64,000 nucleotides of DNA from IMG/VR virus record IMGVR_UViG_3300032782_000001, positions 248,001 to 312,000 of that record; one strand, written 5' to 3'. Positions 9,234 to 46,058 of the stretch are shown piece by piece. The stretch's first letter is position 1, and every line of letters begins with the position of its first letter. The notes beneath the pieces are model-generated. The model made no database searches and was not told where the DNA came from. It saw only the letters and a program-made list of their open reading frames with translations. Made by a program: the position numbers and the translations under genes.

Positions 9234-9241
9234 TATATTCT

Positions 9242-9586
9242 GTGGATATTCATCAACTCAAAGCCATCGCAAAACGCGGCGGGATCGTTAAATGGATCGC
9301 TTCGGGCATGTACGAAAAGCTCGGAATGCTAGGAAAGCGAGTCACGGCTCAAGGGCCTAATTCCCCAATCCATTTCTTGTCTGGCGATCGAACCAAATTC
9401 CATTGTGTTGAAGTGAATCCGAAATCCACGGTCCCCGCGGGAGAATTGTTATTTCCTCGAGGCCCCGTTCCCTACGGATTGATCGTGAGTTCACATTACA
9501 AGTATAAAGAAACTGTGCGCTTCAAAGCTGAAGCCCGTGAACGTAAGAAGAACATGAAGATCGTAGCTGAAGTCATGGAATCCTGA
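9242..9586 (+). CDS. Hypothetical protein with C-terminal VMES tag
   Basis: Ends KIVAEVMES*. In-frame GTG at 9242 lies 5 nt after TAGTAT; the track start at 9182 overlaps the previous gene. Confidence 0.65.
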   Translation: MDIHQLKAIAKRGGIVKWIASGMYEKLGMLGKRVTAQGPNSPIHFLSGDRTKFHCVEVNPKSTVPAGELLFPRGPVPYGLIVSSHYKYKETVRFKAEARERKKNMKIVAEVMES

Positions 9587-18146: not shown

Positions 18147-18182
18147 CTCGCAAAATACGCTCGATCGAGCGTATTTTGCGAG
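18147..18182. promoter_or_regulatory. Perfect 36-bp palindrome between divergent genes
   Basis: ctcgcaaaatacgctcga|tcgagcgtattttgcgag; ends 1 nt before ATG 18184. Confidence 0.7.
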
Positions 18183-18183
18183 C

Positions 18184-18525
18184 ATGGGAGACGTCATCTA
18201 TGCCTCCGACGAACATTCTCTCTACGGAGAATTATATCGAATTCTCAATGAGCTGGCTTTGGAAACCGACCTCATGGAAAAGGGTATCATCGTCGGATTC
18301 CATAGGATCGACAATTCTAACTGCAAATATGTATGTCAAATTCAAGACTGGGAGGGGGATGACAGTCCGATCGAATTTGAAAGGAGAATTGAGAAACTGG
18401 TAGAAGGTAATATTCTCATGATTCGACTCCAAGGACGGGGAGCCGATTGCAGATTTTACGTGATTGCGGAAACCATAGAAGAAGCTTTAGGGAAAATTAC
18501 CGTGTTCCAGATCATGGAATCATGA
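18184..18525 (+). CDS. Hypothetical protein with C-terminal IMES tag
   Basis: 113 aa ending ITVFQIMES*. Confidence 0.7.
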   Translation: MGDVIYASDEHSLYGELYRILNELALETDLMEKGIIVGFHRIDNSNCKYVCQIQDWEGDDSPIEFERRIEKLVEGNILMIRLQGRGADCRFYVIAETIEEALGKITVFQIMES

Positions 18526-18753
18526 TTCCATGATCTGACGAACAATATGCACATCACAAGAATCGTCTTTCTCGGGCTGACTATTGAAAGACATCATACC
18601 GCATCGGTCGCATTTCTGTGCAACCATGGCAGGGTCGTATGACCAAGTCATATTAACGTGGACCTCTACAGATTCTTTGTTAGGCTTTTCAGCTCGTACA
18701 CACAGAAATGATTGGTCCTCGCCGTCTACGACATCGCGCCATTTATGATCCAT
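18520..18753 (-). CDS. Small CxxC protein with C-terminal IMES tag
   Basis: CDRC...DDSCDVHIVRQIMES*. Confidence 0.7.
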   Translation of the reverse strand: MDHKWRDVVDGEDQSFLCVRAEKPNKESVEVHVNMTWSYDPAMVAQKCDRCGMMSFNSQPEKDDSCDVHIVRQIMES

Positions 18754-18768
18754 ATCGGAAGCGTACGC

Positions 18769-19229: not shown

Positions 19230-19556
19230 TCAACTTTCCATGACTTCCCAGGCTTTCATGGTCGGGGTCATGACGACCTCCCACAAGCCTTGTTCATTAG
19301 ACGCTATTACGAGATCTTCCCATAAAATACTACAGAAATTTTCTCGGAGTTCAAAAATGGCGTTGGGACAAATCTTGTGATTATCGGCATATCTCGTCAG
19401 CGAATTAACGAACTCAACAAATACCTTTTCGTTATCAGGATTCCCTACCGGGTATAAGCGCCTCGCGCGCTCCATACATGCGCCCAAGATCCGTGCTTTT
19501 TCCCAGCTGCGGAGTTCTTCGTCTGTTGGTTCAGAAGAATAATGTGTCGCAGTCAT
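19230..19556 (-). CDS. Hypothetical protein with C-terminal VMES tag
   Basis: Ends MKAWEVMES* (Ser codon AGT). Confidence 0.7.
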   Translation of the reverse strand: MTATHYSSEPTDEELRSWEKARILGACMERARRLYPVGNPDNEKVFVEFVNSLTRYADNHKICPNAIFELRENFCSILWEDLVIASNEQGLWEVVMTPTMKAWEVMES

Positions 19557-19600
19557 TCCATCTTCAAGGCCTTACACTGGAAAGAATTGTAATGTTTGGA

Positions 19601-19957
19601 GTGGAGCGCCTCATATTGGAACCCACATTGCTCATGCATTGGATTCGGGAAGCTGAATGGAATGAACGCACGAAAAGAGTGAAAGCTGTGGAATTGGGCA
19701 TAGGAAGTTATGTAGAATTCCGACGATGTCGACCTACAGGATTCGATTCAATAACTGATATAAAATCTCTTGCAACCGGACGCATGGGGACAGTTTGGGG
19801 TGTGGAAATTATCGCATCCAGATTTAACGCGGAAAACGTGATTGTGTTCGTTTTTGAGGACGATTCTCGAGAAATCCGTGGAAAATGCATGCAAAAGGAA
19901 GATCACATGTGCGGACACGAAAATTGTCGAGTCGTCCGTGAAGTCATGGAGAGCTGA
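19601..19957 (+). CDS. Hypothetical protein with C-terminal VMES tag
   Basis: Ends CMQKEDHMCGHENCRVVREVMES*. Start is GTG 19601 (TAATGT-N5) or ATG 19592. Confidence 0.65.
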   Translation: MERLILEPTLLMHWIREAEWNERTKRVKAVELGIGSYVEFRRCRPTGFDSITDIKSLATGRMGTVWGVEIIASRFNAENVIVFVFEDDSREIRGKCMQKEDHMCGHENCRVVREVMES

Positions 19958-19994: not shown

Positions 19995-20426
19995 ATGAAC
20001 TTTCCGGAAACCACCATGCAGTCCCAAGCTGATGTGGAAAATATTCTGGCGAAGGTTGCCTTCCGGCCCAGTTGTGTGAACCTCGACTGGAAATGGGAAT
20101 TGAAGCCCGTTTATTCGGCTCCTCCCGAATCCGATATTTCAGGATGGCTCATCCGGACCTCATTCGTCAGACCTGACACGGATAGCGGAGAAATCCAGCG
20201 AGGATTTGGAAGGTGGGAATATGTGGAAAAAGGAACTTCAATCAGCGGAGTTGTGAAAACTTGCTGGCTCCTCGCCGAACTCATCGTACGGCATGAACTC
20301 ATGGAAGCTTTCACCTACGAAGGATCGAAGATCTTTGATCCTCATCACGCTGTAGGTATTTTGAAGTCAGCTCAGACCGTTCAGATCATCATGAATCAAA
20401 AAGAGCAAGCAAGCCCAAGCCCATAA
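19995..20426 (+). CDS. Hypothetical phage protein
   Basis: 143 aa; RPDTDSG...GRW...HELMEAFTYEG..IFDPH pattern. Confidence 0.65.
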   Translation: MNFPETTMQSQADVENILAKVAFRPSCVNLDWKWELKPVYSAPPESDISGWLIRTSFVRPDTDSGEIQRGFGRWEYVEKGTSISGVVKTCWLLAELIVRHELMEAFTYEGSKIFDPHHAVGILKSAQTVQIIMNQKEQASPSP

Positions 20427-20428
20427 AG

Positions 20429-20824
20429 TTAGCTAGACATAACTTCAGTAACACAACATTCTTCATCAGAATGATGATTTCCAGCAACCATCGTTCCGCA
20501 TTTCCAACAGAACATCTCGAGGATGAACACGGCAACGGTCCGACGCCCGGAAGTGTCTGCCATATGTTTGGAAATCAATTTCCGCACGTTCTCAGGAAAG
20601 AAATTATCTCTCGTGCGACTGAAATTCCCGAGGGAAATAGTCCAATGACGATTTTCCACTGGATCAATCATCGTCCCGTCTTTATCGTATCCAACTGACG
20701 TCCAACCCAAAAGAGGTGGGAAAACCCCGGGAATGTCAGCACAAATGACAGAATCTCCTGTGCGCCTGACATGCTCGTGCATATCTTCAAAAAGTTCGCG
20801 CACAGTTTGGAAGAGAACTTGCAT
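20429..20824 (-). CDS. Hypothetical protein with CxxC/HH..EEC module and VMSS tag
   Basis: Ends CWKCGTMVAGNHHSDEECCVTEVMSS*. Confidence 0.7.
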   Translation of the reverse strand: MQVLFQTVRELFEDMHEHVRRTGDSVICADIPGVFPPLLGWTSVGYDKDGTMIDPVENRHWTISLGNFSRTRDNFFPENVRKLISKHMADTSGRRTVAVFILEMFCWKCGTMVAGNHHSDEECCVTEVMSS

Positions 20825-20839
20825 TGTAGAGTTGTCTCT

Positions 20840-21307
20840 ATGCCCGTAGAACCTAACCCGTACGATACACCTGAATTGATTGAACTCCGGAAGGGTCAGG
20901 GAGACCCTCTCATTCTATATCTGATTGTCCGGGAATCACTCGGAATGGGCGTGGGGAAAATTGCGGCCCAATGCGCTCATGCTACTCAAATGGTGATGTT
21001 GCGACACCTTGAGTTGGAAAGAGACGCATGGGAAAATCAAATGTCACCAGCTCATTCACCGAGTCATGAAGCTGCCCAAAAACTTCGCAGTGTCGTAGAA
21101 GAATGGCTCCGAACATCCTTCCGAAAAGTCGTCCTAAAGGCTGACGATAAAGAATGGGCAAAAATCAAAGAAACGGTAAACGTCTTCGTCGTTAAGGATG
21201 CCGGGTTGACCGAAGTGGAAGCTGGTTCAGAAACCGTGATGGCGCTCTGGCCAATGCGGAAGAGCGAAGCTCCGAAAATTATCCAAAGACTTCAGGTCCT
21301 GAAATAG
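20840..21307 (+). CDS. pth2: Peptidyl-tRNA hydrolase, Pth2 (archaeal/eukaryotic-type) family
   Basis: YLIVRESLGMGVGKIAAQCAHA, RKVVLK and VVKDAGLTEVEAGSETVMALWP are Pth2 hallmarks. Start placed at ATG 20840. Confidence 0.9.
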   Translation: MPVEPNPYDTPELIELRKGQGDPLILYLIVRESLGMGVGKIAAQCAHATQMVMLRHLELERDAWENQMSPAHSPSHEAAQKLRSVVEEWLRTSFRKVVLKADDKEWAKIKETVNVFVVKDAGLTEVEAGSETVMALWPMRKSEAPKIIQRLQVLK

Positions 21308-21535
21308 TCAGGATTCCATGACATCACGAACGATGCAATGAGGGCAACCACTCTCTGCCCCATCGTCTGTCATCTTTTTACAAATCGGGCAGGGAGGATC
21401 AGGCCAATCCACAAGCATGGACCGCCGAGGCTGACTAATGTAATCGATAGTCTGCCGGATGGGGTCCGTATTCGGAACGACCAATTTCTTGATAATAGGG
21501 AACGAAAACTTCTTGAATTCAGGAACGTCAACCAT
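21308..21535 (-). CDS. Small Zn-finger protein with VMES tag
   Basis: DPIRQTIDYISQPRRSMLVDWPDPPCPICKKMTDDGAESGCPHCIVRDVMES*; ATG 21535 follows the upstream stop at 21537. Confidence 0.7.
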   Translation of the reverse strand: MVDVPEFKKFSFPIIKKLVVPNTDPIRQTIDYISQPRRSMLVDWPDPPCPICKKMTDDGAESGCPHCIVRDVMES

Positions 21536-21536
21536 T

Positions 21537-21701
21537 TCAAGACCCCATGATTTGGGCGACGACACATTCTTCTTCTGTATGCACTAATCCACGCTCGACT
21601 AAGAGCCTGCACTTCTCGCAAGAAATCAAAACGACGAATTTCTTCGGGCCTTTCATGTTGACCCGAATCACCTGTGTGATTTCAAATTCAGGACATCGCA
21701 T
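21537..21701 (-). CDS. 54-aa Zn-finger protein with IMGS tag (below ORF-track cutoff)
   Basis: Hand translation: MRCPEFEITQVIRVNMKGPKKFVVLISCEKCRLLVERGLVHTEEECVVAQIMGS*; it exactly fills the gap between its neighbours. Confidence 0.7.
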   Translation of the reverse strand: MRCPEFEITQVIRVNMKGPKKFVVLISCEKCRLLVERGLVHTEEECVVAQIMGS

Positions 21702-21702
21702 G

Positions 21703-21948
21703 TCAAGACTCCATGACTTGAATCACAACACAAGCTTCTTCGGAATGAAGATGCTCACGACCTTCCAAAATGGTCCTTCCACAATCTAAACATGAATAAA
21801 TACGCATCATGCCTTCTTCCGGCATCAAATCAGACAGTGTCATTTTCTTGAGAGGAGTCGTTTCTAATTCCTGACGGATGGGCATCCTTCCAATAAACTC
21901 TGGCTCGGATTCCCGATAAACCGCCCCCGTAAATTTCAAATTAACCAC
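21703..21948 (-). CDS. Small Zn-finger protein with VMES tag
   Basis: GTG 21948 directly after the upstream stop; ...EPEFIGRMPIRQEL...CLDCGRTILEGREHLHSEEACVVIQVMES*. Confidence 0.7.
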   Translation of the reverse strand: MVNLKFTGAVYRESEPEFIGRMPIRQELETTPLKKMTLSDLMPEEGMMRIYSCLDCGRTILEGREHLHSEEACVVIQVMES

Positions 21949-21949
21949 G

Positions 21950-22201
21950 TCAGGATTCCATGATGGAGCGAACGGTGCATTCAAGACAACCGAGTTCGGC
22001 TCCGTTATCGGAGTCAAGTAATCCGCAGATCCGACAAGGGACATCTGGAAGTTGACTGACTGGCGAACGCCGTCGGACTTCACCTGCGACCCAGAGACGG
22101 TCATTGATGTCGGACATAATGCTTCGTCCGAGTTTTGCTCGCTTCTCAGGATCTAGAAGACACTGTTTGACGAATTTGATCTTATCGTCTTCGTGAGACA
22201 C
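21950..22201 (-). CDS. Small Zn-finger protein with IMES tag
   Basis: ...RAKLGRSIM...VSQLPDVPCRICGLLDSDNGAELGCLECTVRSIMES*. Confidence 0.7.
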   Translation of the reverse strand: MSHEDDKIKFVKQCLLDPEKRAKLGRSIMSDINDRLWVAGEVRRRSPVSQLPDVPCRICGLLDSDNGAELGCLECTVRSIMES

Positions 22202-22612
22202 TCACAACATTACACGCAAAATCCGAAGGGCGCGTGTTACATCATCATCAGATAGGCCTAGGGAGTTATCTACACGGATGAACTCCGGTCCAAAGCCTCC
22301 CAAATCCCTATCGTCGAGGATCAAGAATTGATCCGGGTGATTCTCTTGTACCCAAGCAAGAATACCCTGGACACGGTCTTCCGCAACGTCCAAAGCCTCG
22401 AGACGAGGTCCAGTATATCCAGAAGCCCTGAAGATAATTTCAAGCTCGTCCGGTTCAAACCGAATCCGCCAAAGAGAAGTCACGACCACACGAACATGTG
22501 GAATCGCGGCGAGCTCATTGAGACGAGCTACTAAATGCCGTTCCAAAATTCCTGGTCGAAAAGCTCCACCGAGGTTTAGAACGCCGTCGATGTCCAGGAA
22601 GATGACTTGCAC
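22202..22612 (-). CDS. HAD-superfamily phosphatase, Swiss-Army-Knife RNA-repair-like type
   Basis: VIFLDIDGVLN (DxDGV), VVVTSLWR, FLILDD, GLSDDDV. Confidence 0.8.
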   Translation of the reverse strand: MQVIFLDIDGVLNLGGAFRPGILERHLVARLNELAAIPHVRVVVTSLWRIRFEPDELEIIFRASGYTGPRLEALDVAEDRVQGILAWVQENHPDQFLILDDRDLGGFGPEFIRVDNSLGLSDDDVTRALRILRVML

Positions 22613-22615
22613 GAA

Positions 22616-23182
22616 CTAAGATACGACGACAGAATCGAGATCTACAAGCTTCAAGATCCCATCCGAAGTCCGCATAACGTTGCCAGGATTCACATCCACG
22701 TGAACAGTTCCGCTTTCTTCCAGTCTATCGTACAATTCCAAAGCATCGTCGAGAAAGTGGGATCCCATGTATTGCTTGATGGGCTTCCCAGAAATTTTGG
22801 CTCGAACGATAGCAGCAACTTCTTCCGCGTTGTCTGCCGGCTCGAGCTTCTCCATTACGTAGTAGTACGCCCAGCCTTGGGATCGACCAACACCTGGATT
22901 GTCGATCTCGCACAGAACGTCTGCTTCGTAGATTCTCGGATAAACTGTAGCGTCTTTCCCCATCAAACGTTTGATTTCCGCTACACGGTCTCGGGCGTCC
23001 TCCTCGTCAATCGCTACTTGGATCTTCAGAACACGGTCGCCCAAATCATAGACTTCACCCTGCCTTCCTGAACCAAGAAGTTTCCCGAGATCAGGAAAGG
23101 ACACATCACAGGTGTCTTGAACAGCGTCCATCATGCCGCCGGCAAAGATGGTGAGGGCAGTACGATAGAGCTTCATGATCAA
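22616..23182 (-). CDS. Protein kinase-fold enzyme (Ser/Thr kinase-like, minimal)
   Basis: LGSGRQGEVY (Gly loop), VLK, YYVMEKL, HVDVNPGNVM (catalytic loop), KLVDLD (DFG equivalent). Start may be ATG 23176. Confidence 0.8.
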   Translation of the reverse strand: MIMKLYRTALTIFAGGMMDAVQDTCDVSFPDLGKLLGSGRQGEVYDLGDRVLKIQVAIDEEDARDRVAEIKRLMGKDATVYPRIYEADVLCEIDNPGVGRSQGWAYYYVMEKLEPADNAEEVAAIVRAKISGKPIKQYMGSHFLDDALELYDRLEESGTVHVDVNPGNVMRTSDGILKLVDLDSVVVS

Positions 23183-23227
23183 GAGAGCTCCATCCAGATG
23201 TCCATGCTTGGACAGGAAACTAAAGAG

Positions 23228-23443
23228 TTAGCTCTCTATGACGGACCGAATGACACATTCAGGACACCCGTCGTCAGCTCCACCGTCGTTTACGATTACG
23301 CCGCTATCAATTACAAAGATCTTCTTGCAACTCGCACACGGTTTATCGTAATCCCGTGTAGTTCGAGCAGGGAGGGTCATCGCTCGTGCCAGTGCGAGCC
23401 TTCCCGCATGCGTAGAAATGATCTGTGTAATCACGGAGTCCAT
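23228..23443 (-). CDS. Small Zn-finger protein with VIES tag
   Basis: ...AGRLALARAMTLPARTTRDYDKPCASC...GGADDGCPECVIRSVIES*. Confidence 0.7.
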   Translation of the reverse strand: MDSVITQIISTHAGRLALARAMTLPARTTRDYDKPCASCKKIFVIDSGVIVNDGGADDGCPECVIRSVIES

Positions 23444-23454
23444 TCAGAATTCCA

Positions 23455-23658
23455 TCATTTGTATGGCCTGCGAAGCTTTGTGATACCTGATTTGAGTATT
23501 TCATAACATCGGAGACAATCCCGGTTCCTATGAATTTTGGAGAGTTGTTGGTTACCAAGCTTGAGCGCCCGCTGCCTCGTCGCCGCTTGGACGCGAACAC
23601 GATGGGTCCTCCAGGGGTTACCACCATTCGCCCATATGATCCATTCTCTTAGCTTCAT
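23455..23658 (-). CDS. Small hypothetical protein
   Basis: 67 aa, in operon with its neighbours. Confidence 0.55.
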   Translation of the reverse strand: MKLREWIIWANGGNPWRTHRVRVQAATRQRALKLGNQQLSKIHRNRDCLRCYEILKSGITKLRRPYK

Positions 23659-23662
23659 TAAT

Positions 23663-23893
23663 CTAGCTCTCCATCACTTGCATTACAATACACTCTTCCG
23701 GAGAATGATGGTGTCCATATTTGAATGTGAATCCGCAATCGTCACATTTCGTTATTAACGAGATCTCCATGAATATAGGCTGTGGATCCACGTGGTAGAC
23801 CACTAGAGTTTGTGGCTGGAGTTCCATCTTCTTGGGTGGAAGATCTGGTCCATTCCAGCGAATTTCGCCAATATCAAAAGATTCTGGCATCAT
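23663..23893 (-). CDS. Small Zn-finger protein with VMES tag
   Basis: CDDCGFTFKYGHHHSPEECIVMQVMES*. Confidence 0.7.
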   Translation of the reverse strand: MMPESFDIGEIRWNGPDLPPKKMELQPQTLVVYHVDPQPIFMEISLITKCDDCGFTFKYGHHHSPEECIVMQVMES

Positions 23894-24177
23894 TCAATAA
23901 CCTTGACGAAAGGAATCGATTTAGCTAATTTTACGTATCGAGCCAAAGAGCCGCGAAGGGATTTGGAAGAGCCTGCAGGCAGTTTCACAAACTGAATCTC
24001 TACGGTCGGATAGAAATCACCGGCTTCCGCATGACATTGGACACTTTGAATGAGTCCAATCGGCTTACCATGAATCTGGACCCTTGTGCATCCAGCGGGG
24101 AATCCGAATTCCAAAGTCAACGGGCGTGCAACCGCAAGATCAGCTGCCATGGAGAACAATACAAAAGAATCATGCAA
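23890..24177 (-). CDS. Small hypothetical protein
   Basis: 95 aa; ATGA-type overlap with the next gene. Confidence 0.55.
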   Translation of the reverse strand: MHDSFVLFSMAADLAVARPLTLEFGFPAGCTRVQIHGKPIGLIQSVQCHAEAGDFYPTVEIQFVKLPAGSSKSLRGSLARYVKLAKSIPFVKVIE

Positions 24178-24229
24178 CTTCGGTTTGCACGTCCCTACGT
24201 CGTCTCAACCGGAAAGTTGGAATGTCCAT

Positions 24230-24260
24230 TAGCCTACCCGGTTTCTCACCGGGTAGGCTA
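24230..24260 (-). terminator. 13-bp stem-loop just downstream of sheath gene
   Basis: tagcctacccggt-ttctc-accgggtaggcta, 17 nt after the sheath stop; no U-tract. Confidence 0.6.
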
Positions 24261-24276
24261 GGTAGATTGAGCAGTT

Positions 24277-27200
24277 TTAAGCGCTGATGCGGATCTGAAG
24301 GGTGCTTACAACGTATTCCAGCGGGAACACCGGTACGTAGATCGAATTGGTCCGCATGATGGTCGGATCGCTGTCATCCACGGCTGCGGAGATACCCGAA
24401 ACCTTGGCGACAATCTGGCTATCGATCAAACGTCCGAACATTGCAGTCAACGCACGTTCCGTCGTCTTAATTAGGGTGCCCGTGAACTTCTGCCCGATGA
24501 ACGGATCAAGAGTCGTTCGGACGCTCTGTTGCACGAATTGAATCGTGAGGGTAACAGACGGCGTACGGGTAATGACCGTGTCAGTCCGGGTCGTCAAACC
24601 GTGGCGGACACGAAGTCCGGAGTCCACAAGCTCGATAACCGAGACTCCAGAGACCGCCACTTGATTGGCTTCCGTGGGGTCAAGAAGCCTTCCCGGGCGA
24701 ACAAACCCGAGAACAGGGCGTCGAGTCCAAGGAGAAGCCACGTCAATAGACGGAGTGCAAGTCGTCGCAGCCAGAGAAGCCGCAACGTAGGACCCGTCCA
24801 CGAGTTGGTTTGAGATGTTGCCGAGGCTATCTTGAACTCCGATGAGGTAGGAGTCTGGATAGACCACCACCATGAGTTCGCTGGCCAGTCCTTGCGCAAT
24901 AGCCTGAGCAGCCAACGGATTAGTACCCGCTGCCACTCCAACCACGCCCATCCGCTCTCCCTCTTGACGCGGAGAGCTCATCACAACGCAGTGCTGGTTC
25001 AGGTAGGCGAAAATCGCCGGATCCGTGCCCAGCGGCGTAATGATGTCAGGCTTGACATTGCCTTGAATTGGCTTGCGAAGCTCGTCGATCGCGGCCGTGA
25101 AAGATCCGACGGAGGCTTGAGAGGTCCCAGGGACCTTCAAAACCTGCTTCAAACCCACGAGGACAGCTCCATTGAGCAATGCGAGACGAGCTCCAAGCGA
25201 GAGGGGGAACTCCGGAGTAGGAGGCCCGAACGCTGCTTGAATCGATTTCGCATCCCGGTAGAGCGCCGCTGAAAGATCGGTCTTCGCGAAGTTGTACGAC
25301 ACGTAATAAATGTCGCCGATCTGAGGCTCGTTGCCGCTCCTACCAAAGGTCTGCACGATTCCAGTCGTATCAATACCCATGTTCAAGGTATTGAACACCG
25401 TAGTTTCGAGACCCGGGATGGAGCGGTATGGAATGGAAGCGTCGGCCGTGAAGGTAGAATTCACGATGAGCGTGAACGTTCCACCGTTCGCGTAATCTCC
25501 CGCGGACGCAGGGAGAACAGTGAACCTGAGGCCCGTGATAGCATCCGTATAGGTCTGACCGGGGAATCCGACGCCAAACGAACCATTAGGATTCGTCGAA
25601 GTAACCGTGTAACCTGCACGTGCAGCTTCACCAGCATCTCCGGAAGCACCAGGAACGATCCCGATACCCGTATCCGTTACGAAGATCGTGTTGGCGACCG
25701 ACGTGAAGGACAGAAGACTGCCCGTACCGGCGGTCCTTGAGTTAATCTCGAGGTACCCACCAATTCCCGCCGACGTAATGCGGTAAGCCACAGCCAAAGC
25801 ATTGAAGCTGCCGTTGGCGTTCAGAGCTCCCGCAATATCGGAGGCAAATGGCTGATGACGGAAAGTCGCATTTCCAGAGGTGAACCCGAGAATGGTGTTC
25901 GCGGAACCCTGGTTGATTCGAACAAGAGAAGTGACCGTATTGGTCCTTGAGACCATGACCACTTCACCAGCGTTGATGCCGAGGCCTTCCTGAGCCACAA
26001 GCTCCGCAAGAACCGACGTGACAATGTTCACAGTGTCGTTGACAACGTGAACGCCAGCTTGCGTCCTGTGCGAGTTATACTTGCTCTTGAGCTCCTCCGC
26101 CAAAATGAGTGCCGAGCGGAGGTCCGTCGCATCCGGCGCTGCTACAACGTTGACCGTATCGGTCATGGGGTGATATGCACCGCCAACGTTAGTCCGGTGG
26201 TTGTTGTAATCACCCTTCGCCTCGTTCAGAAGGGTGATGGAGCTTGCCAGATCCGTCGCATTGGGCGAAGTAATCCCGTTCGCAACGTCTGCCACCGTAT
26301 GGAAAACGGCTGATGCGATGTGCGTGTTATACTCGGACTTAATATTGTTGGCGAGTACGACCAGCGCTGCAGTTTGAGTTGCCTGATCTGCTGCTGGTGC
26401 GTTTGCCGAGTATCCGGCGTTGATGTACGCAACAACATCTTCGATGGAGACTGAAACGCCAGCCGGCAAAATGGCGACGTAATCAGTACCATCAATCGTG
26501 AATTGGAAGTTGTCGTTTACCGCCGCGGTGATAGCGAACGGTGCCGTCTTCGTTCCAACTTGGATCGCCGGCTGATTGATAGCGTTGTAAGAACCCGTCG
26601 ATTCTTGATTCGGAGTGAAACCCAGTGCCGGAGCGGCATCCGTCTGTCCAGGCGCCGTGGGAGAAAGAACCTTGACGTTAGACTTGAGTCCGTTAGTCGC
26701 CGAGAGTACGTTGCGTCCAACGACCTTAAGAATCGACTGAACGCCGTAGGTAACCACCGACGCGAGATTGTTCGGCGCCGTCGAAGCGAAAGTACCGGAA
26801 CCATCTGGATGCACTTGCACATCCGCATCGATCGCCGTGTTGATGTCCGTTGCAACCTGCGCAAGCGTGGTAGCTGCAGAAACATCAATCGGCGCAATGT
26901 TGACACCATCCACTTGGATCACAAGGTGATCCGTAGCTTGGAAGACCAACGCGCCGGGGTTACTGATGGGTTGCGAGAGAAGCTGCGCCACATAGGCCAG
27001 CGAAAGATCCACGGTGAATGCGGGGTTACCGTCAACCACCACACCACCGAAGTTTTTCGTGGCGAGATAGACGTCGTACGGCTCGGCCCCGGCATTCGAG
27101 AAAGAAGCGTGAGTGGCCGGCTCCAACGCATTGCTGAAAGCAATGGTGACCGTTTCAGATACGGGATTCCCACCGAAGTGGATGGCGTCAGTGACGTTCT

Positions 27201-28950
27201 CCACTCCCGACGGCCATTGAACCGTCTGAGGAAGCGCGCTCTTGGTCCCGAATCGGACCCCGTAGAGAGGCCCATTGTTGTTCACAGCTGAAGAGATCGT
27301 GAATTGACCAATCCCACTCGGACCAGGAGTAACTACCTTCAAAGTGAAGGTGTCGTCTCCCAATCGGTTATACCAGAACGTAGCAAACGCCAGGTAATCC
27401 GCAGGAACGGGGTCGCGAAGCGTGAAGGTATTCGTGGAGGAGTCCACTTCGAGCACAGTCACGGCGGGGCGAGAAACCGCGTCCCTAAAATTCTTGCCGA
27501 CGTAGACAGTGACAAGATCCGGACGATTGGTCGGAAGGTCGATACGACCGTTCGTGATCGTCTGATAAAGATCAATTCCGAGTGGCGTGTCACGACCGTT
27601 ACCGGTCGTGGGCGTCAAAGGCATGACGAACTTGGTCGTAGAAACGGTATCCGTTACCGTATCTGTGAACCTGTCACACTCCACACCGAAAATTCGATCA
27701 TCCACCAGCAGACCGACGATCTGAGTCCCATCGAAGCTGGATACTCCAGTCTTCACTCCAGCCGTCACCTGGAACGCAGTTCCCCATTGGATCATCGACT
27801 GGTCGGCATCGTTGACAACAACGAAATCCGGACCATTGAGATAATCGCGGCGCCCCGGAGCAATGCCAACATTGCCCATCGTGACGATGTTGTTGTTGGG
27901 CAGATAGTCGAAAGTATCTTGGAACGTGTTGAAGTAATACTGAATGGTGATCTTTGATCCGTCTTTCGGAGCGAAAGGAAGGGTAACGAGGCGATTGGCA
28001 CCATCCACGGACGTGGCGATCACTTGAAGGTTGTCGACCAGTACGACAACCTTAGAAGTGTCCGTCGTCGTGATACCTCCATCGGAACCATCAACGATAG
28101 GTCCATTGAAGACACGGAACGTCTTGTTGCGATTCGTGTAATCTCCAGGGTTGAACCCGAGAGCTCCATTCCCAGTTCCGGAACCAATAAGTACGTTGCC
28201 AGTAGCAACGAGCTGAACGTGATTCAAACCCTGAGCGTCTACGTGAACAGATGCCTGGAGTCCCGTGATCCCCGCGGCGTTCACATCGTTCGCGATGTCA
28301 GTCGCGGTGCGCGTACCCGCCGTCAGTTTGATAACACCTTGCAAGACATCGTTGACGGTCACATTGAGTTTGTCATTGACATTCAACGTGATGGTGTAAG
28401 TCTCCGCCTTCGGAGCAACGAGTACGGCTACACCTTTCGTGATCTGAGCCGAAAGATTATCCGTGATCCGCGTGTCTTTGCGGTGGAAATTGTAGCTGAC
28501 AAGGACAACATCGGTCGCTTGAGGCGGCACCAGAAGGCTTACGAGACCGTTGGTACCATCGACCGCAGACACGACAGCTTGATCACCGTTTACGGTGACC
28601 GAAACCTTAGTCGTATCGAAAGTCGTCTTGCCAATGCCCGAACCATCTACAATTGGGTAATTACGGACCCTGAATTGAGATCGGGTTCCGTCCTGTTGAC
28701 CCAAAGTAGGATTTTGGGGGGTCCCACTCAAGACCCACCGACCCGTAGCGTCTTCGTTGAAGATCGGCGTGTCAGCAACGCTGCTGGACCCGCGGATGAT
28801 CTCGAAGTCGGTCTGGGTGAGAGTCTCCTGCCCGGTACCAATCAGAACGGGGACCCTCAGTCCACCGAGGAGCTGTCCAAGGACGGGCTCGGTGATGGTC
28901 TGCGTGTAGACGCCGGGAGGCGCGTAGGTCGTGAACGGTCCGATGCCCAT
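24277..28950 (-). CDS. Contractile tail sheath protein with large internal insertions
   Basis: N-terminus FTTYAPPGVYTQT...VPVLIGTG; C-terminus LDPFIGQKF...AMFGRLIDSQIVAKVSGISA...YVPVFPLEYVVSTL, typical sheath ends; 1557 aa. Confidence 0.9.
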   Translation of the reverse strand: MGIGPFTTYAPPGVYTQTITEPVLGQLLGGLRVPVLIGTGQETLTQTDFEIIRGSSSVADTPIFNEDATGRWVLSGTPQNPTLGQQDGTRSQFRVRNYPIVDGSGIGKTTFDTTKVSVTVNGDQAVVSAVDGTNGLVSLLVPPQATDVVLVSYNFHRKDTRITDNLSAQITKGVAVLVAPKAETYTITLNVNDKLNVTVNDVLQGVIKLTAGTRTATDIANDVNAAGITGLQASVHVDAQGLNHVQLVATGNVLIGSGTGNGALGFNPGDYTNRNKTFRVFNGPIVDGSDGGITTTDTSKVVVLVDNLQVIATSVDGANRLVTLPFAPKDGSKITIQYYFNTFQDTFDYLPNNNIVTMGNVGIAPGRRDYLNGPDFVVVNDADQSMIQWGTAFQVTAGVKTGVSSFDGTQIVGLLVDDRIFGVECDRFTDTVTDTVSTTKFVMPLTPTTGNGRDTPLGIDLYQTITNGRIDLPTNRPDLVTVYVGKNFRDAVSRPAVTVLEVDSSTNTFTLRDPVPADYLAFATFWYNRLGDDTFTLKVVTPGPSGIGQFTISSAVNNNGPLYGVRFGTKSALPQTVQWPSGVENVTDAIHFGGNPVSETVTIAFSNALEPATHASFSNAGAEPYDVYLATKNFGGVVVDGNPAFTVDLSLAYVAQLLSQPISNPGALVFQATDHLVIQVDGVNIAPIDVSAATTLAQVATDINTAIDADVQVHPDGSGTFASTAPNNLASVVTYGVQSILKVVGRNVLSATNGLKSNVKVLSPTAPGQTDAAPALGFTPNQESTGSYNAINQPAIQVGTKTAPFAITAAVNDNFQFTIDGTDYVAILPAGVSVSIEDVVAYINAGYSANAPAADQATQTAALVVLANNIKSEYNTHIASAVFHTVADVANGITSPNATDLASSITLLNEAKGDYNNHRTNVGGAYHPMTDTVNVVAAPDATDLRSALILAEELKSKYNSHRTQAGVHVVNDTVNIVTSVLAELVAQEGLGINAGEVVMVSRTNTVTSLVRINQGSANTILGFTSGNATFRHQPFASDIAGALNANGSFNALAVAYRITSAGIGGYLEINSRTAGTGSLLSFTSVANTIFVTDTGIGIVPGASGDAGEAARAGYTVTSTNPNGSFGVGFPGQTYTDAITGLRFTVLPASAGDYANGGTFTLIVNSTFTADASIPYRSIPGLETTVFNTLNMGIDTTGIVQTFGRSGNEPQIGDIYYVSYNFAKTDLSAALYRDAKSIQAAFGPPTPEFPLSLGARLALLNGAVLVGLKQVLKVPGTSQASVGSFTAAIDELRKPIQGNVKPDIITPLGTDPAIFAYLNQHCVVMSSPRQEGERMGVVGVAAGTNPLAAQAIAQGLASELMVVVYPDSYLIGVQDSLGNISNQLVDGSYVAASLAATTCTPSIDVASPWTRRPVLGFVRPGRLLDPTEANQVAVSGVSVIELVDSGLRVRHGLTTRTDTVITRTPSVTLTIQFVQQSVRTTLDPFIGQKFTGTLIKTTERALTAMFGRLIDSQIVAKVSGISAAVDDSDPTIMRTNSIYVPVFPLEYVVSTLQIRISA

Positions 28951-31207: not shown

Positions 31208-31540
31208 TCACGAACCGCGACGACTACGACGGGACTTCTTGGGCTCCATTCCCACGTCAGTCGAGCTGGATGACTCGCCAGACTCCATAGACGGAGCATC
31301 ATCAGACGATGAATCATCAAGAGGAGCATCTCCTTCAGAAGGAGGATCCTCTACTTGAGGCTCTCCGTCAGGGACAACGGGCAAATCTTCCGGATCTGCA
31401 TACAACACCACATCCAATGAGTGCTGCGCGTTGTGGAGAACAACATCCTCCTCGGTCAGGACGATGTGAGGAACTTCGACTCCCTTATAGTTCGGCATTT
31501 GGCACCTACCGATCGGTGAATCGGAAAAAAGGTCGCTCAC
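31208..31540 (-). CDS. Small acidic hypothetical protein
   Basis: Asp/Glu/Ser-rich with a basic C-terminus; ATGA overlap with the actin-like gene. Confidence 0.5.
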   Translation of the reverse strand: MSDLFSDSPIGRCQMPNYKGVEVPHIVLTEEDVVLHNAQHSLDVVLYADPEDLPVVPDGEPQVEDPPSEGDAPLDDSSSDDAPSMESGESSSSTDVGMEPKKSRRSRRGS

Positions 31541-32586
31541 TCTTCAGACTGACTCAGTAGCAAAAGTCCAGTCGCGACGGCCGTCATAGGGTCTTTAGCG
31601 GCCCTGATTTCTGAAATTTGGATGGGAAACTTAGCACGATGAATTTCAAACCGTTCTTTGAACTTATCAAGAAATCCGGAAGCCAAAGAAGTTCCTCCAC
31701 TGACTACGAGAGGTACAGGCTTCGGGACCAGAAGCTCTTGACGAGCTTTTGAAAATTGTTGGATGATGGTATCAATGGAATAGTCAATGAGCGCTTGAAT
31801 AAATAACGCAATGGCTTCACCTTCAAGAGAACTCGATTTTTTACTAATGTCAATCCCACTTTCTTTAATGGAACAAATTTTGGCGGCTGTCGTACTGACA
31901 GCTTTGGCAGCTCCGGAGTCTACCCAATCTCCTCCGCGTCCTACGGAAAATTCCAGAGCGCTCATAGCATTGTAACTAAGACAAACGTTAGTCATGCCGG
32001 AGCCATACGAAATGCCGAGACCTGAAAAATTCTCTTTGGAACATTCCGAGAACACGATGGCCTGAGCCTCATTGGCAGGTTCAGCAGTAAATCCAAGTTC
32101 TGTCAAAATCTTCTTGAGAATAGCAGAGTGGTAAGTAACATCTGAACCTTGCACGTCAACAGCTGGAGCTGGCACTGAATAGACACATTTTTCACCGGAC
32201 TTACGAGGAGCACCCAAAATTCTCTTGATCATCAGAGCGATGACTTTTTGCGCATCCACCTCACCGGGGGTGATCACACCACCAGACATTGGACGACGAG
32301 CTTCTCGATTAAATAAATTCGCCGTCTCTAAGGCTTCATCCCCAATGATCAAAAGTTTCCCATCAAGCTCGACATGACTCGTGCCTGACAGTTTCAACAT
32401 TCGCATATTTCGGTTATCAAGAGGTAAATCGATGAAGGCATCCCTGATTCTAGTAGTTTTGACAGTCTTCCCATTTTGACGGGCAGACACAAAGTTCATA
32501 GTACCGGCATCAAGTGACGCTCCTGCGACAGCGGTATCATCGATGTCGTCAAGGTCAACACTAAACTTGGTCTCATTCTTCGCCAT
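31537..32586 (-). CDS. Actin-fold ATPase (MreB/ParM/FtsA-like superfamily)
   Basis: Phosphate-1 SLDAGTMNF, connect-1 ANEAQAIVF, phosphate-2 ISYGSGMTNV, adenosine VVSGGTSL, connect-2 DPMTAVATGL. Confidence 0.85.
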   Translation of the reverse strand: MAKNETKFSVDLDDIDDTAVAGASLDAGTMNFVSARQNGKTVKTTRIRDAFIDLPLDNRNMRMLKLSGTSHVELDGKLLIIGDEALETANLFNREARRPMSGGVITPGEVDAQKVIALMIKRILGAPRKSGEKCVYSVPAPAVDVQGSDVTYHSAILKKILTELGFTAEPANEAQAIVFSECSKENFSGLGISYGSGMTNVCLSYNAMSALEFSVGRGGDWVDSGAAKAVSTTAAKICSIKESGIDISKKSSSLEGEAIALFIQALIDYSIDTIIQQFSKARQELLVPKPVPLVVSGGTSLASGFLDKFKERFEIHRAKFPIQISEIRAAKDPMTAVATGLLLLSQSEE

Positions 32587-33794: not shown

Positions 33795-34010
33795 TCAGCT
33801 CCCCATAACTTCATAGATGATTTCTTCTTCAGGAGATAACCACTGAAGACGTATATTCCAAAAAGGAACTGCCGGACGATTACCGCGTTTTCGTTTTTCT
33901 TTCCAACTGACGGGTACGCATTCTTGGACGACCCAAATCTGATCCCCTTGGATTCGAAAAACAGTCCCCGGTTCATGGTATCGGGTCGCGTCTCTCTGAA
34001 CCATGATCAT
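33795..34010 (-). CDS. Small protein with VMGS tag inserted among neck genes
   Basis: ATG 34010 lies 4 nt after the upstream stop; ends EEEIIYEVMGS*. Confidence 0.65.
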   Translation of the reverse strand: MIMVQRDATRYHEPGTVFRIQGDQIWVVQECVPVSWKEKRKRGNRPAVPFWNIRLQWLSPEEEIIYEVMGS

Positions 34011-34014
34011 GAAA

Positions 34015-35346
34015 TTAGGAACGTCTGTTTGCATTTTCGTAGGACACTGTAGTGCCTCGGATTTCACGTTCATCCGGAATCGAAGCAGCTTCAGTAACCA
34101 TCGGAGTAGCATTACCCTTGCCTGGAATTGTATATCGCGTCTGAGGGGCTACCAGTACAGAAGTATCAAGAACTGGAACTTGATATCGAATATCTGACTC
34201 ATCAAACTTGGACACATTGAAGAACTGTGCGAGTTGCATGCCACGGTTACTGGGCATCCGAACTGGTCCAACAGCATATCTGTCGCCGTTGAGTTTTACA
34301 ATGAAATCTCGCTGAGAAATAAGAGGGCTCGGTAAAGCCCAAACTTCATATGAATGTTCAACCGTACGACCACGAGCACTTTGAGCAATAGACTTAGCGG
34401 CATCATCTGGAGAGATATCGATGTCATACGGACCATCATACCCACCGATTATTCCTGTGCCATAACAAACAAGACAATCTGCACTAGGTTGTCGGTGCAG
34501 ACTGGAATAACATCCACACTTTGGTCCTGCGGCCCGGCGGATCATTAATTTGACTCTCTCGCCGCCTTGTTCCAACATCCAACGTTGGCGGCGAATAGCT
34601 TCACGCCAAATGTAATCGAGCTTCTCAATTTCAAAATTATTCGCTATGGCGGCATCTTCTAAACGTGTTTCGAGAAGCTGGCCACTATCCGCATCATAAG
34701 CTACGGTTGTGATACGATAGAAAATGCGTTGAGCAAGAGTAGTAGGAACTTGATTTGACAAGTACCTGTACGTAGCCAAAACGATGGAGTTAGGGTCTTT
34801 TGGTAAAACAGCATTCGTTTGAATTTGACTAGCTACATCAAACGTAGGCTCGCGACGAAGTTCCACTTCCCCTCTAGTCGCGTTTATGGATTCAACAAAC
34901 GCAGGAACCCCATCAACGGTTACTTGAACATTCAAATTTGTAATATTGGCAGATCCGGGAGAAGGATATATGACGATCGGATTATATCGAGTCCGAAACT
35001 CGTAACGTCCGTCTCCGTCTGAGCTAGGTCCACGAAAGAAAAAATTTTTAGAAACATCTTCCTGGAGAGCTAGGACAGTCCTCGTACTATCACGCCAATA
35101 AGCTGCGCCTACGGGGACAGTATTAAGACGCTCATATGGGCCGTACTCGGAGTCAAAACTCCTGTAAATATTGACCCCTAAAAGATCGAATCGAGAATTC
35201 GCTTGTAATTCTCCCGGCAGGGTCCAGCGAATGTCGAACGTCTCTTTTAGAAAACCTGAAGATACGAATATATTCAGTGGGGGTAGAGGTAAAGCAGGTG
35301 AATCCTGCTCCAGAATCCCAATTTTCCTGTCCGGCGGGAAAGGCAT
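34015..35346 (-). CDS. Head-closure/neck-like structural protein with FnIII/Ig-like N-terminus and Cys cluster
   Basis: 443 aa; CGC...CLVCYGTGIIGGY, then beta-rich DFIVKLNGDRYAV head-closure-like region. Positional inference. Confidence 0.5.
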   Translation of the reverse strand: MPFPPDRKIGILEQDSPALPLPPLNIFVSSGFLKETFDIRWTLPGELQANSRFDLLGVNIYRSFDSEYGPYERLNTVPVGAAYWRDSTRTVLALQEDVSKNFFFRGPSSDGDGRYEFRTRYNPIVIYPSPGSANITNLNVQVTVDGVPAFVESINATRGEVELRREPTFDVASQIQTNAVLPKDPNSIVLATYRYLSNQVPTTLAQRIFYRITTVAYDADSGQLLETRLEDAAIANNFEIEKLDYIWREAIRRQRWMLEQGGERVKLMIRRAAGPKCGCYSSLHRQPSADCLVCYGTGIIGGYDGPYDIDISPDDAAKSIAQSARGRTVEHSYEVWALPSPLISQRDFIVKLNGDRYAVGPVRMPSNRGMQLAQFFNVSKFDESDIRYQVPVLDTSVLVAPQTRYTIPGKGNATPMVTEAASIPDEREIRGTTVSYENANRRS

Positions 35347-41824: not shown

Positions 41825-41839
41825 TTGTCTTCCATCGAA

Positions 41840-45044: not shown

Positions 45045-45052
45045 GCCTAACG

Positions 45053-46057: not shown

Positions 46058-46058
46058 A

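Follow-up and report, generated by a model that had tools for sequence, protein, structure and literature searches.

Mini-proteins of a huge phage that join pieces homologous to its major capsid protein to a predicted zinc ribbon and a shared C-terminal tag

The locus considered here lies in a window of 64,000 nucleotides, the whole stretch of DNA that was analysed, which is part of a 436-kb contig of a huge soil/wetland phage related to uncultured phage LR745208, to Tunturiibacter phage Tunturi_5 and, more distantly, to Bacillus phage G. An earlier note, based on the sequence alone, proposed that four mini-proteins with a VMES-type tail carry 20-45-aa pieces of an HK97-fold major capsid protein (MCP), three from the N-arm and one from the C-terminal part, grafted onto a zinc finger and the tag. 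Are these small proteins indeed made from pieces of a capsid protein, are they maintained as such, and what might they be for?

The four open reading frames exist on the minus strand as described, each ending in CxxC...(C/H)xxC followed by (V/I)(M/I)ES and a stop codon, and the observation made in the earlier note is confirmed. The motifs that the note had ascribed to the MCPs of large uncultured myophages occur almost letter for letter in the MCP of uncultured phage LR745208.1 and in the MCP of the parent contig itself, and the division into three N-arm pieces and one C-terminal piece is correct. However, the note under-described the system. A fifth ORF with an MCP piece lies on the plus strand, the cluster holds eight zinc-ribbon/tag paralogues instead of four, and the tag also sits on unrelated small proteins across the whole phage clade. 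The features of the locus are collected in the table.

Features of the mini-protein locus, with positions counted from the first nucleotide of the 64,000-nt window. Shuffle counts give the number of 2000 shuffled sequences that reached the observed score against an MCP profile; MCP residues are those of the parent contig's own protein unless stated otherwise.
Position	Strand	Product	MCP piece	C-terminal part	Support and homologues
23228..23443	-	Mini-protein, 71 aa	N-arm; residues 2-32 match MCP 16-46 (45% identity)	CxxC...CxxC, tail VIES	hhalign 87%; 0/2000 shuffles; E 2e-6; full-length homologue at L311 517-768 (40% identity, E 3e-14)
21950..22201	-	Mini-protein, 83 aa; GTG start abutting the stop of the HAD gene; not called by the JGI gene caller	Longest N-arm piece; residues 21-53 match MCP 29-61, ending in ..VSQLPD	Zinc ribbon (predicted), tail IMES	4/2000 shuffles; E 0.012; family profile 97%
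21308..21535	-	Mini-protein, 75 aa from the ATG at 21535, the likely true start, just after the upstream stop (ORF 21308-21565)	N-arm; residues 16-47 match MCP 30-61	Zinc ribbon (predicted), tail VMES	1/2000 shuffles; E 2e-5; full-length orthologue P0136 / L313 1661-1873 (49% identity, E 1e-19)
21703..22104	-	Mini-protein; either 133 aa from the ATG at 22104, overlapping the 21950 gene in another frame, or 81 aa from the GTG at 21948, without this overlap	C-terminal piece (..GAVYRESEPEFIGRMPIRQEL..), matching MCP 226-259 and gp27 201-253	CxxC...H..C, tail VMES	hhalign 92%; core 0/2000 shuffles; E 4.6e-6; homologues P0133 and P0141
19592..19957	+	Fifth MCP-piece protein, 121 aa as called by JGI (ORF could start at 19478)	MCP about 168-241	CX7CXHX2C, tail REVMES	hhalign 50%, P 1.6e-4; 0/2000 shuffles; E 6e-4 (MCP profile) and E 1e-4; P0135
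21537..21701	-	Paralogue, 54 aa	N-terminus resembles an MCP motif (PEF....IR) by eye only	Zinc ribbon (predicted), tail IMGS	297/2000 shuffles, not supported; three synonymous and no nonsynonymous SNPs in strain X2
23663..23893	-	Paralogue, 76 aa	None significant	CxxCG..HHSPEEC, tail VMES	
20429..20824	-	Paralogue, 131 aa	None significant	CxxCG..HHSDEEC, tail VMSS	
18520..18756	-	Paralogue, 77 aa (stop codon at 18520-18522)		CxxCG...C..H, tail RQIMES	Homologue in L053; P0137
18184..18525	+	Small tagged protein without zinc ribbon; others of this kind are 19230-19571 (-), 9182-9586 (+) and 33795-34148 (-, VMGS)		tail ..QIMES	
20771..23182	.	Genes interleaved with the array: PTH2 peptidyl-tRNA hydrolase (20771-21307, +), HAD_SAK_2 RNA-repair-type phosphatase (22202-22612, -), short protein-kinase-like gene (22616-23182, -)			
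24277..28950	-	Tail sheath, 1557 aa; the variable island begins just downstream of it, here and in relatives			

The resemblance of the N-terminal parts to an MCP of the phage G gp27 type (Pfam PF25209) is real and beyond chance. A phmmer search of the PDB placed 6wkk_A, the gp27 MCP of Bacillus phage G, first for both the 23228 protein (MCP 12-51) and the 21703 protein (MCP 226-252). Conversely, when gp27 or an MCP profile was used as query against all six-frame ORFs of the window, the top four hits all lay in this cluster. Family profiles that were built without any MCP sequence aligned to the MCP profile with hhalign at 97.1% (E 6.6e-11, MCP 18-60) for the N-arm type and 95.7% (E 9.5e-9, MCP 237-259) for the C-terminal type. 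No MCP gene lies within the window. The parent's own MCP was found by walking along the contig, about 76 kb away, at positions 787-1680 of the locus L308, and its 297 residues are 75.6% identical to the LR745208 MCP; it belongs to the same gp27-type family. The similarity is nevertheless confined to short segments: the mini-proteins are 54-133 aa long, only 20-75 aa align, and in gp27 numbering these segments correspond to the N-arm (about residues 7-55) and the C-terminal region (about 160-253). A complete HK97 fold of about 280-300 aa is lacking, while the remainder of each protein, the predicted zinc ribbon plus tag, is absent from MCPs, indicating that the mini-proteins are derivatives of the family and not members of it. 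The Pfam model PF25209 did not report any of them even at E <= 10, and scans with Pfam, PHROGs and PADLOC gave only sub-threshold zinc-ribbon hits and no capsid family. The MCP module is also not obligatory, since three of the eight zinc-ribbon paralogues, 21537, 23663 and 20429, as well as a candidate picked by eye in the relative L010, failed the shuffle test. The upstream extension of the 133-aa form of 21703, read in the frame that overlaps the zinc-ribbon region of 21950, lines up by eye with conserved MCP residues, but it is not significant on its own and its 'WN' comes from the tag codons of 21950 read out of frame.

The part that follows the MCP piece is shared more widely. Eight genes have in common a stretch of about 30 aa with the ligand pattern of a zinc ribbon just before the tag, and this pattern is invariant or nearly so in 13 aligned tails, although the Pfam zinc-ribbon models score below their cut-offs and metal binding is inferred from sequence alone. 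AlphaFold2 (AF2) models the hairpin and the C-terminal helix at pLDDT about 80. In the model of 21703 the MCP piece is coil at pLDDT 51-61, and in that of 23228 it forms two low-confidence helices; the mean pLDDT of the two models was 61 and 65, which is too low for fold searches, and the ESM Atlas was uninformative. The fusion point is constant: the MCP text runs to ..V(E/D)xLP, and CxxC follows.

It could be argued that such pieces are non-functional debris, leftovers of duplicated MCP genes that were broken up by mobile elements such as introns or homing endonucleases and are merely still open. In the sister gp27 clade, MCP genes are often split by LAGLIDADG-type insertions after ..ANPIR (about residue 36), after ..VVDPL (about residue 55) and at about residue 125, and the fusion point of 21950 and 21308 coincides with the residue-55 site. 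In another phage (locus L146), an MCP C-terminal fragment is fused to an unrelated tail. However, the proteins encoded by the sister-clade insertions are unrelated to the zinc-ribbon/tag module, no homing-endonuclease gene lies next to the array, and the ORFs are tightly packed with stop/start overlaps. DNA similarity to the MCP gene is fully erased while protein similarity persists: comparison of the pieces with the MCP gene gives pS 0.66-0.93, which is saturated, but pN 0.34-0.56, while unrelated segments give a mean pN of 0.73 with a minimum of 0.60. Among the paralogue tails pN is 0.33-0.47, below pS of 0.57-0.80. A second strain, X2, which is roughly 2% divergent, differs in the mini-protein genes by 7 synonymous and 5 nonsynonymous SNPs and no indels (pN/pS 0.20, binomial P 0.006), although this test rests on only 12 changes in low-coverage contigs.

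Homologues point in the same direction. A word-indexed protein search with the eight paralogues found only the copies of the parent contig itself, but an exhaustive HMMER search recovered relatives in at least four other metagenomic contigs, L311 to L314, which come from four other samples. The homologue P0131 scores 34.6 bits (E 1.7e-11) against the MCP profile over positions 11-54, P0133 and P0141 carry the C-terminal motif, and P0136 is a full-length orthologue of the 21308 protein. In L311 and L314 the N-arm-type and C-terminal-type fusions are adjacent genes. Retention of the intact fusion under purifying selection, which had been set beforehand as a test of the proposal, is thus borne out, neither of the outcomes that the note had named as refuting it, no capsid alignment or decaying fragments, was observed, and the debris explanation is largely refuted and very unlikely.

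The tag itself behaves as a feature of the protein and is specific for this clade. Its serine is encoded by both TCN and AGY codons. The tag ends 9 of 769 ORFs in the window and 8 of 8939 in loci of relatives identified by the tail sheath, against 0 of 17,554 in loci of other MCP clades, and it ends 8 of 14 small genes in L311 and 8 of 17 in L312. The cultured relative Tunturi_5 shows neither tags nor MCP pieces in its 50-kb structural region. The genes upstream of the island are conserved in 33-40 relatives, while the array and its neighbours were found only in the parent contig. A conserved terminal peptide shared by otherwise unrelated small proteins in a variable locus is also what characterizes the internal proteins of T4 (IPI-III, Alt), diverse anti-restriction proteins that share only a capsid targeting sequence (PMC3012670). 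The T4 signal, however, is N-terminal, about 10 aa long and removed by the prohead protease, whereas the motif here forms the last four residues of a C-terminal helix, and T4 internal proteins do not contain MCP segments.

This parallel leads to the possibility that the tagged proteins are virion cargo, with the tail as a capsid-loading signal, the MCP-derived strand or helix helping to dock some of them into the shell lattice, and the proteins being injected with the DNA. The gp27-type MCP is a small, encapsulin-like HK97 protein without a delta domain, and encapsulin cargo-loading peptides are short C-terminal peptides on unrelated proteins that bind the inside of an HK97-fold shell. V-M-E|S fits the hydrophobic-x-Glu pattern cut by T4-type prohead proteases, and a cultured relative encodes a head maturation protease beside its MCP. 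On the other hand, cleavage at the extreme C-terminus would remove a single residue, the tag has no sequence similarity to known loading peptides, and nothing links the tag to the MCP computationally. We consider this reading, in which encapsidation is inferred by analogy alone, unlikely.

A second possibility is that the pieces are capsid-assembly competitors, binding scaffold, protease, portal or neighbouring MCP subunits, either to poison head assembly of co-infecting related phages in a dominant-negative manner or to tune the timing or size of the phage's own head assembly. The copied regions are the most conserved inter-subunit and assembly elements of this MCP family, the 21703 core is as close to MCPs of other clades as to that of the parent (37 bits against gp27 versus 28.5 bits against the own MCP), and related huge phages with the same MCP family co-occur in the same samples. 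In contrast, the genes lie 76 kb from the head module, in a variable accessory island beside RNA-repair-type genes, and the pieces are only 25-45% identical to an MCP that is 75-94% conserved among relatives, which may be too diverged to co-assemble. A complex prediction of the parent's MCP with the 23228 protein scored 0.00 and gave no answer on binding. Small proteins or MCP homologues that interfere with the capsid assembly of another element are found in satellites (SaPI CpmB/Ccm, P4 Sid), but these are either whole MCP paralogues or unrelated scaffolds encoded by satellites, and not 20-75-aa MCP segments on a zinc-ribbon scaffold inside the phage's own genome. This explanation is possible but rather doubtful.

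The explanation we favour, tentatively, is that the mini-proteins are capsid-segment mimics. The analysis establishes that in five of the tagged genes the part ahead of the metal-binding motif is an ancient, highly diverged copy of a segment of the lineage's own MCP, the N-arm helix plus first strand in three genes and a late A/P-domain stretch in two, that the two fusion types recur side by side in other phage contigs, and that amino-acid similarity has been kept. What these proteins bind, whether they are expressed and what they do are inferred; the locus was found in DNA sequencing runs only and in no RNA run. In this view the MCP-derived stretch, predicted to be unstructured on its own, would act as a peptide mimic of conserved MCP surface elements and compete with real MCP for something that binds those elements, while the predicted zinc ribbon and the C-terminal helix ending in VMES would be a common handle used by the phage for its whole set of small accessory proteins, for targeting, loading or turnover. 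Because the neighbours are translation- and RNA-repair-type genes in a variable island, a hypothetical host sensor of capsid protein is ranked as the most likely competitor target, with assembly partners second. The interpretation given in the earlier note is therefore only partly supported: the in-frame fusion of MCP segments to a predicted zinc ribbon and tag holds, while its three proposed functions, a decoy for capsid-sensing immunity, a dominant-negative inhibitor of rival head assembly or an assembly modulator, have not been shown and remain plausible inferences from the anatomy and the gene neighbourhood.

A rationale for a decoy comes from MCP-sensing abortive-infection systems, since MCP directly activates CapRel, as in CapRel-SJ46 with the SECphi27 MCP (PMC9712102). 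Another such system is Lit with the Gol peptide of T4 gp23, and both show that short regions of an HK97 MCP can be the molecular pattern read by host immunity. Those are host sensors and their triggers, however, and a decoy that binds an immune sensor through the trigger epitope might activate it instead of blocking it. No phage-encoded MCP-fragment decoy is described in the papers that could be searched, and the design of these proteins, a capsid-protein segment joined to a predicted zinc ribbon and a shared tail, has not been described before. The furthest-reaching possibility, which the data leave standing but which is doubtful, is that a clade of huge soil and wetland phages marks a fast-evolving arsenal of small proteins with the four-residue tag (V/I)M(E/D)S and keeps within it paired mimics of its own capsid protein, one of the N-arm and one of the C-terminal strand, on a predicted zinc-ribbon scaffold, as decoys that blunt host immune sensors recognizing conserved capsid epitopes. 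If so, this would be the first phage-encoded capsid-fragment counter-defence.

Capsid proteins are among the main patterns by which bacterial immunity recognizes phages, and head assembly is a point where phages and satellites compete. A conserved and selected family of proteins made from capsid-protein segments gives a concrete, testable candidate for how a phage might mask or exploit those interactions, and its two modules, 20-45 aa of MCP-derived peptide and about 35 aa of predicted zinc ribbon with tag, are short and separable, which makes them readily accessible to experiment. Separately, a four-residue C-terminal tag shared by many unrelated small proteins of one phage clade points to an unrecognized sorting, loading or turnover system in huge phages, and offers a simple sequence handle for finding their accessory gene arsenals in metagenomes. 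At the level of the DNA, an inverted repeat revealed the tag of the plus-strand gene at 19592, and the stop codon of the paralogue at 18520 overlaps that of the convergent tagged gene at 18184 inside a perfect 30-nt palindrome.

Between 18.5 and 24 kb the window carries a dense set of small ORFs, mostly on the minus strand. An earlier note had described four of these as capsid-protein fragments joined to a zinc finger and a tag, and this observation was borne out: the four ORFs exist as described and contain the strings reported for them. Reading of the DNA refines two of the four. The 21308 ORF most likely starts at the ATG at 21535, one base after the stop of the upstream gene, while the 21703 ORF starts either at the ATG at 22104, overlapping the 3' third of the 21950 gene in another frame, or at a GTG at 21948, two bases after the 21950 stop. 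If the longer form is real, two family members overlap in different frames. The JGI gene caller kept this longer ORF and dropped the 21950 gene, even though the latter has a complete zinc-ribbon pattern and tag. The overlapping frame lines up by eye with MCP (major capsid protein) residues about 196-225, but this is not significant on its own. A local HMM of the C-terminal 36 residues finds eight paralogues with a CxxC...(C/H)xxC zinc-ribbon pattern followed by (V/I)(M/I)(E/G/S)S and a stop, seven of which fall into two subtypes. Genes in the run 22201-21308 abut or overlap by a few bases, and the tag codons (ATGGAG / ATGGGG) also supply a Shine-Dalgarno-like GGAG/GGGG 8-9 nt before the next start. 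Interleaved with the array are an HAD_SAK_2 phosphatase, a PTH2 peptidyl-tRNA hydrolase and a short, truncated protein-kinase-like gene, which retains the HxDxxxxN and DLD motifs and hits the kinase models of the PD-T4-6 defense system at E 2e-9. The 1557-aa gene just upstream is the tail sheath.

Features of the mini-protein array and other loci, with the alignment of each capsid-derived piece to the major capsid protein (MCP) of the parent contig. Positions are those of the window unless a contig handle is given; L307 and L308 are stretches of the parent contig.
Feature	Position	Strand	Size	C-terminal part or other detail	Residues aligned	MCP residues	Identity	E-value
Zinc-ribbon/tag paralogue	23228			CxxC..G(A/x)xxGCxxC	2-32	16-46	45%	2e-6
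Zinc-ribbon/tag paralogue	21950		83 aa	CxxC..G(A/x)xxGCxxC	21-53	29-61	30%	0.012
Zinc-ribbon/tag paralogue	21308		75 aa	CxxC..G(A/x)xxGCxxC	16-57	30-72	37%	2e-5
Zinc-ribbon/tag paralogue	21703		133 aa (ATG) or 81 aa (GTG)	CxxCG..HHSxEEC	49-80 (133-aa form)	226-259	41%	3e-5
Fifth MCP-piece ORF	19592-19957 (aligned as 19478-19957)	+		CX7CXHX2C before REVMES	47-122	168-241	25%	1e-4
Zinc-ribbon/tag paralogue	21537			CxxCG..HHSxEEC
Zinc-ribbon/tag paralogue	23663			CxxCG..HHSxEEC
Zinc-ribbon/tag paralogue	20429			CxxCG..HHSxEEC
Zinc-ribbon/tag paralogue	18520
Tagged ORF without zinc ribbon	18184-18525	+		(V/I)MES
Tagged ORF without zinc ribbon	19230-19571	-		(V/I)MES
Tagged ORF without zinc ribbon	9182-9586	+		(V/I)MES
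Tagged ORF without zinc ribbon	33795-34148	-		VMGS
Overlap of two family members if the 133-aa ORF is real	21950-22104	-	155 nt
Protein-kinase-like gene	22616-23182	-	188 aa
Perfect palindrome	18508-18537		30 nt
Perfect palindrome	18147-18182		36 nt
MCP of the parent contig	L308:787-1680		297 aa
324-aa protein followed by a 147-aa protein, about 60 kb right of the array	L307:113-1087 and L308:11082-11525		324 aa; 147 aa	147-aa protein ends in ..RDVMES
Tagged ORF	L307:12911-13351	-
Tagged ORF	L307:14407-15099	+
MCP C-terminal fragment with a different tail, in an unrelated huge phage	L146:2857-3420		about 170 aa
Volactin-type protein	31537-32586	-	349 aa
G+C-rich ORF	55504-62778	-	2424 aa
Possible glycan modification module	40331-50988	-

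The resemblance to a capsid protein is real. A phmmer search against all PDB chains gave the same top hit, 6wkk_A (Bacillus phage G gp27 major capsid protein), for two different mini-proteins at two different places, with residues 4-46 of the 23228 protein on MCP 12-51 and residues 9-35 of the 21703 protein on MCP 226-252. With gp27 as query against every six-frame ORF of the window, the best hits were the 21703 ORF (E 4.6e-6), 23228 (1.5e-4), a plus-strand ORF at 19409-19954 (0.004) and 21308 (0.5), and an HMM built from 73 IMG/VR MCPs returned the same four at the top. When each N-terminal segment was shuffled 2000 times and scored against that HMM, the observed score was reached 0 times for 23228, for the 21703 core and for the plus-strand ORF, once for 21308 and four times for 21950, whereas 21537, 23663, 20429 and 18523 were no different from their shuffles. 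Family profiles that contain no MCP sequence align to an MCP profile with hhalign at 97.1% (E 6.6e-11, 43 columns, parent MCP 18-60) for the N-arm type and at 95.7% (E 9.5e-9, MCP 237-259) for the C-terminal type. However, the PF25209 model of Pfam does not report the mini-proteins, which lack a complete fold and are derivatives of the gp27/PF25209 MCP family rather than members of it.

No MCP lies in the window. The nearest annotated relatives of the sheath are uncultured phage LR745208.1 (40% identity), Tunturiibacter phage Tunturi_5 (30%) and phage G gp178, and both LR745208.1 and Tunturi_5 have gp27-family MCPs. The LR745208 MCP contains, almost letter for letter, the motifs that the earlier note had attributed to HK97-fold capsid proteins of large uncultured myophages. 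The window is bases 248,001-312,000 of the parent contig (JGI Ga0335082_10000001, also listed as IMGVR_UViG_3300032782_000001; 436,316 bp). Following this contig led to its own MCP, which is 75.6% identical to that of LR745208 and lies about 36 kb beyond the right end of the window. In the three N-arm proteins the MCP text runs up to ..V(E/D)xLP(D), and the first CxxC follows at once. Elsewhere on the parent contig, a 324-aa protein starts with a weakly MCP-E-loop-like stretch (..EGSIPVYDR...RPVVPLFEF..; E 0.005 pairwise against the LR745208 MCP, but not significant against the parent's own MCP), and is followed by a tagged 147-aa protein.

An alternative reading, which the earlier note had named as one that would overturn its own, is that these ORFs are decaying fragments. 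Against the MCP gene, synonymous sites are at saturation (pS 0.66-0.93; unrelated segments average 0.70), while nonsynonymous differences are well below the unrelated level (pN 0.34-0.56, against a mean of 0.73 and a minimum of 0.60 in 300 random pairs). The similarity therefore survives only at the protein level, which is the signature of old, constrained sequences, and the zinc-ribbon tails of paralogues show the same pattern. An exhaustive HMMER search of 1.84 billion representatives with 13 tails found 21 proteins at E <= 0.001, all matching through their last residue. The members from outside the parent include P0131 (83 aa), with a very clear N-arm (34.6 bits, E 1.7e-11, HMM 11-54) plus zinc ribbon plus ..RSVMES; P0133 and P0141, with ..VY..EPE(F/R)(V/F)GRF(P/Q)VR.. 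plus zinc ribbon plus VMES; P0136, a full-length orthologue of the 21308 protein (49% identity, E 1e-19); and P0128 and P0129, in which only the last N-arm strand remains ahead of the ribbon. Their contigs (L311-L314, from four different samples) show arrays of small genes, with the N-arm type and the C-terminal type adjacent in L311 and L314. In L312 the array lies downstream of a 1561-aa protein that matches the 1557-aa sheath of the window in length and position, and is followed by a VWA protein and a nucleoside hydrolase; a nucleoside hydrolase also lies in the window. The 12.6-kb contig L311 (ENA ERZ24842409) was binned as Phycisphaerales_UBA1924, which may hint at a planctomycete host or may be a binning artifact. 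A second wetland metagenome holds a strain about 2% diverged, the contigs of which show no indels and 18 SNPs over 20400-24300. In the mini-protein genes 7 of these are synonymous and 5 nonsynonymous, giving pN/pS 0.20 and binomial P 0.006, although this is a small sample from low-coverage contigs. Together these results refute the alternative of decaying fragments.

In IMG/VR contigs with gp27-type MCP genes (L160, L170, L204, L223, L101 and others), the MCP genes of the sister clade are repeatedly split by 270-320-aa LAGLIDADG-like ORFs at the same three places, after ..ANPIR, after ..VVDPL and near residue 125, which suggests recurrent group I intron or homing-endonuclease invasion of a capsid gene. 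An unrelated huge phage (L146; IMGVR_UViG_3300035208_003026, 209 kb) has its real, intron-split MCP elsewhere (L160), and also encodes a protein whose N-terminal part is an MCP C-terminal fragment (..EPEFIGRMPIRTELEVIP..LKLGWLV), 72% identical to the 21703 core, fused to a different tail.

The tag extends beyond the zinc-ribbon family. Inverted repeats at gene ends led to four further tagged ORFs that have no zinc ribbon, and the fifth MCP-piece ORF was found in the same way. One of two perfect palindromes is formed by the last codons (QIMES plus stop) of two convergent tagged genes whose stop codons overlap, and the other lies just upstream of the 18184 start; they could be recombination scars between tag sequences or bidirectional terminators. 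ORFs ending in [VI]M[ED]S number 9 of 769 in the window, 8 of 8939 in the loci of 53 sheath relatives and 0 of 17,554 in loci around MCPs of other clades, and in L311 and L312 about half of all small genes end in VM(E/D/G/S/Q)S. Serine is encoded by TCC, TCT, TCA, AGC and AGT, so the constraint acts on the protein. AF2 places the tag at the end of a C-terminal helix that follows the predicted zinc hairpin, the best-modeled part at pLDDT about 80, whereas the MCP-derived part is modeled as coil in the 21703 protein and as two low-confidence helices in 23228. The island downstream of the sheath is variable. The two genes upstream of the sheath are conserved in 33-40 relatives, whereas the array, the kinase-like gene, HAD and PTH2 have no counterpart in any of them, and only single zinc-ribbon/tag genes occur at the same place in the relatives L010 and L053.

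While the capsid origin of the pieces, their fusion to the tagged C-terminal part and their maintenance were established by sequence comparison, any binding partner, function or encapsidation is inferred from the anatomy of the proteins and from their gene neighborhood. The interpretation in the earlier note was therefore supported in part, namely for the grafting of capsid pieces, while the decoy, inhibitor or assembly-modulator roles that it proposed remain hypotheses. The anatomy is a short, probably partner-dependent peptide copied from the most conserved, surface- or interface-forming parts of the MCP, mounted on what would be a compact metal-stabilized knob with a clade-wide C-terminal handle, with several diverged versions kept side by side in an accessory island. 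This design suits competitive mimicry of the capsid protein. As the possible object of competition we tentatively rank a host sensor of capsid protein first, since capsid proteins are direct triggers of bacterial immunity (CapRel, PMC9712102), the neighbors are translation- and RNA-repair-type enzymes of the kind that would undo tRNA- or translation-directed abortive infection, and the island behaves like an arms-race locus. Competition with assembly partners, either of rival phages or of the phage's own head, is ranked second; the one docking prediction gave no answer. A role as encapsidated cargo docked through the MCP-like strand is ranked third, and draws on the parallel with T4 internal proteins, diverse anti-restriction proteins that share only a capsid targeting sequence (PMC3012670).

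The predicted zinc ribbon is generic and the source of the pieces is the gp27/PF25209 MCP family. However, no description of phage proteins built from MCP segments, nor of a C-terminal VMES-type tag, was found in the literature that could be searched. A word-indexed protein search found no relatives at all, and Pfam records for the genes of the relatives, which came from a library without names or annotation, are blank in their contigs. We therefore regard these mini-proteins as a new kind of protein design, which does not imply that the proposed mechanism is established.

Among the structural genes of this huge phage an actin-like protein is encoded, which matches Pfam Volactin (PF25216) at E 4e-70 over its full length. 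A block of genes that may be a glycan modification module comprises a B12-binding radical SAM enzyme, several glycosyltransferases, two NAD-dependent sugar epimerases/dehydratases and a 1122-aa glycosyltransferase-methyltransferase-TPR fusion. The longest ORF in the table has 61-63% G+C in a genome of about 47% G+C, and is flanked by collagen-like tail-fiber genes.
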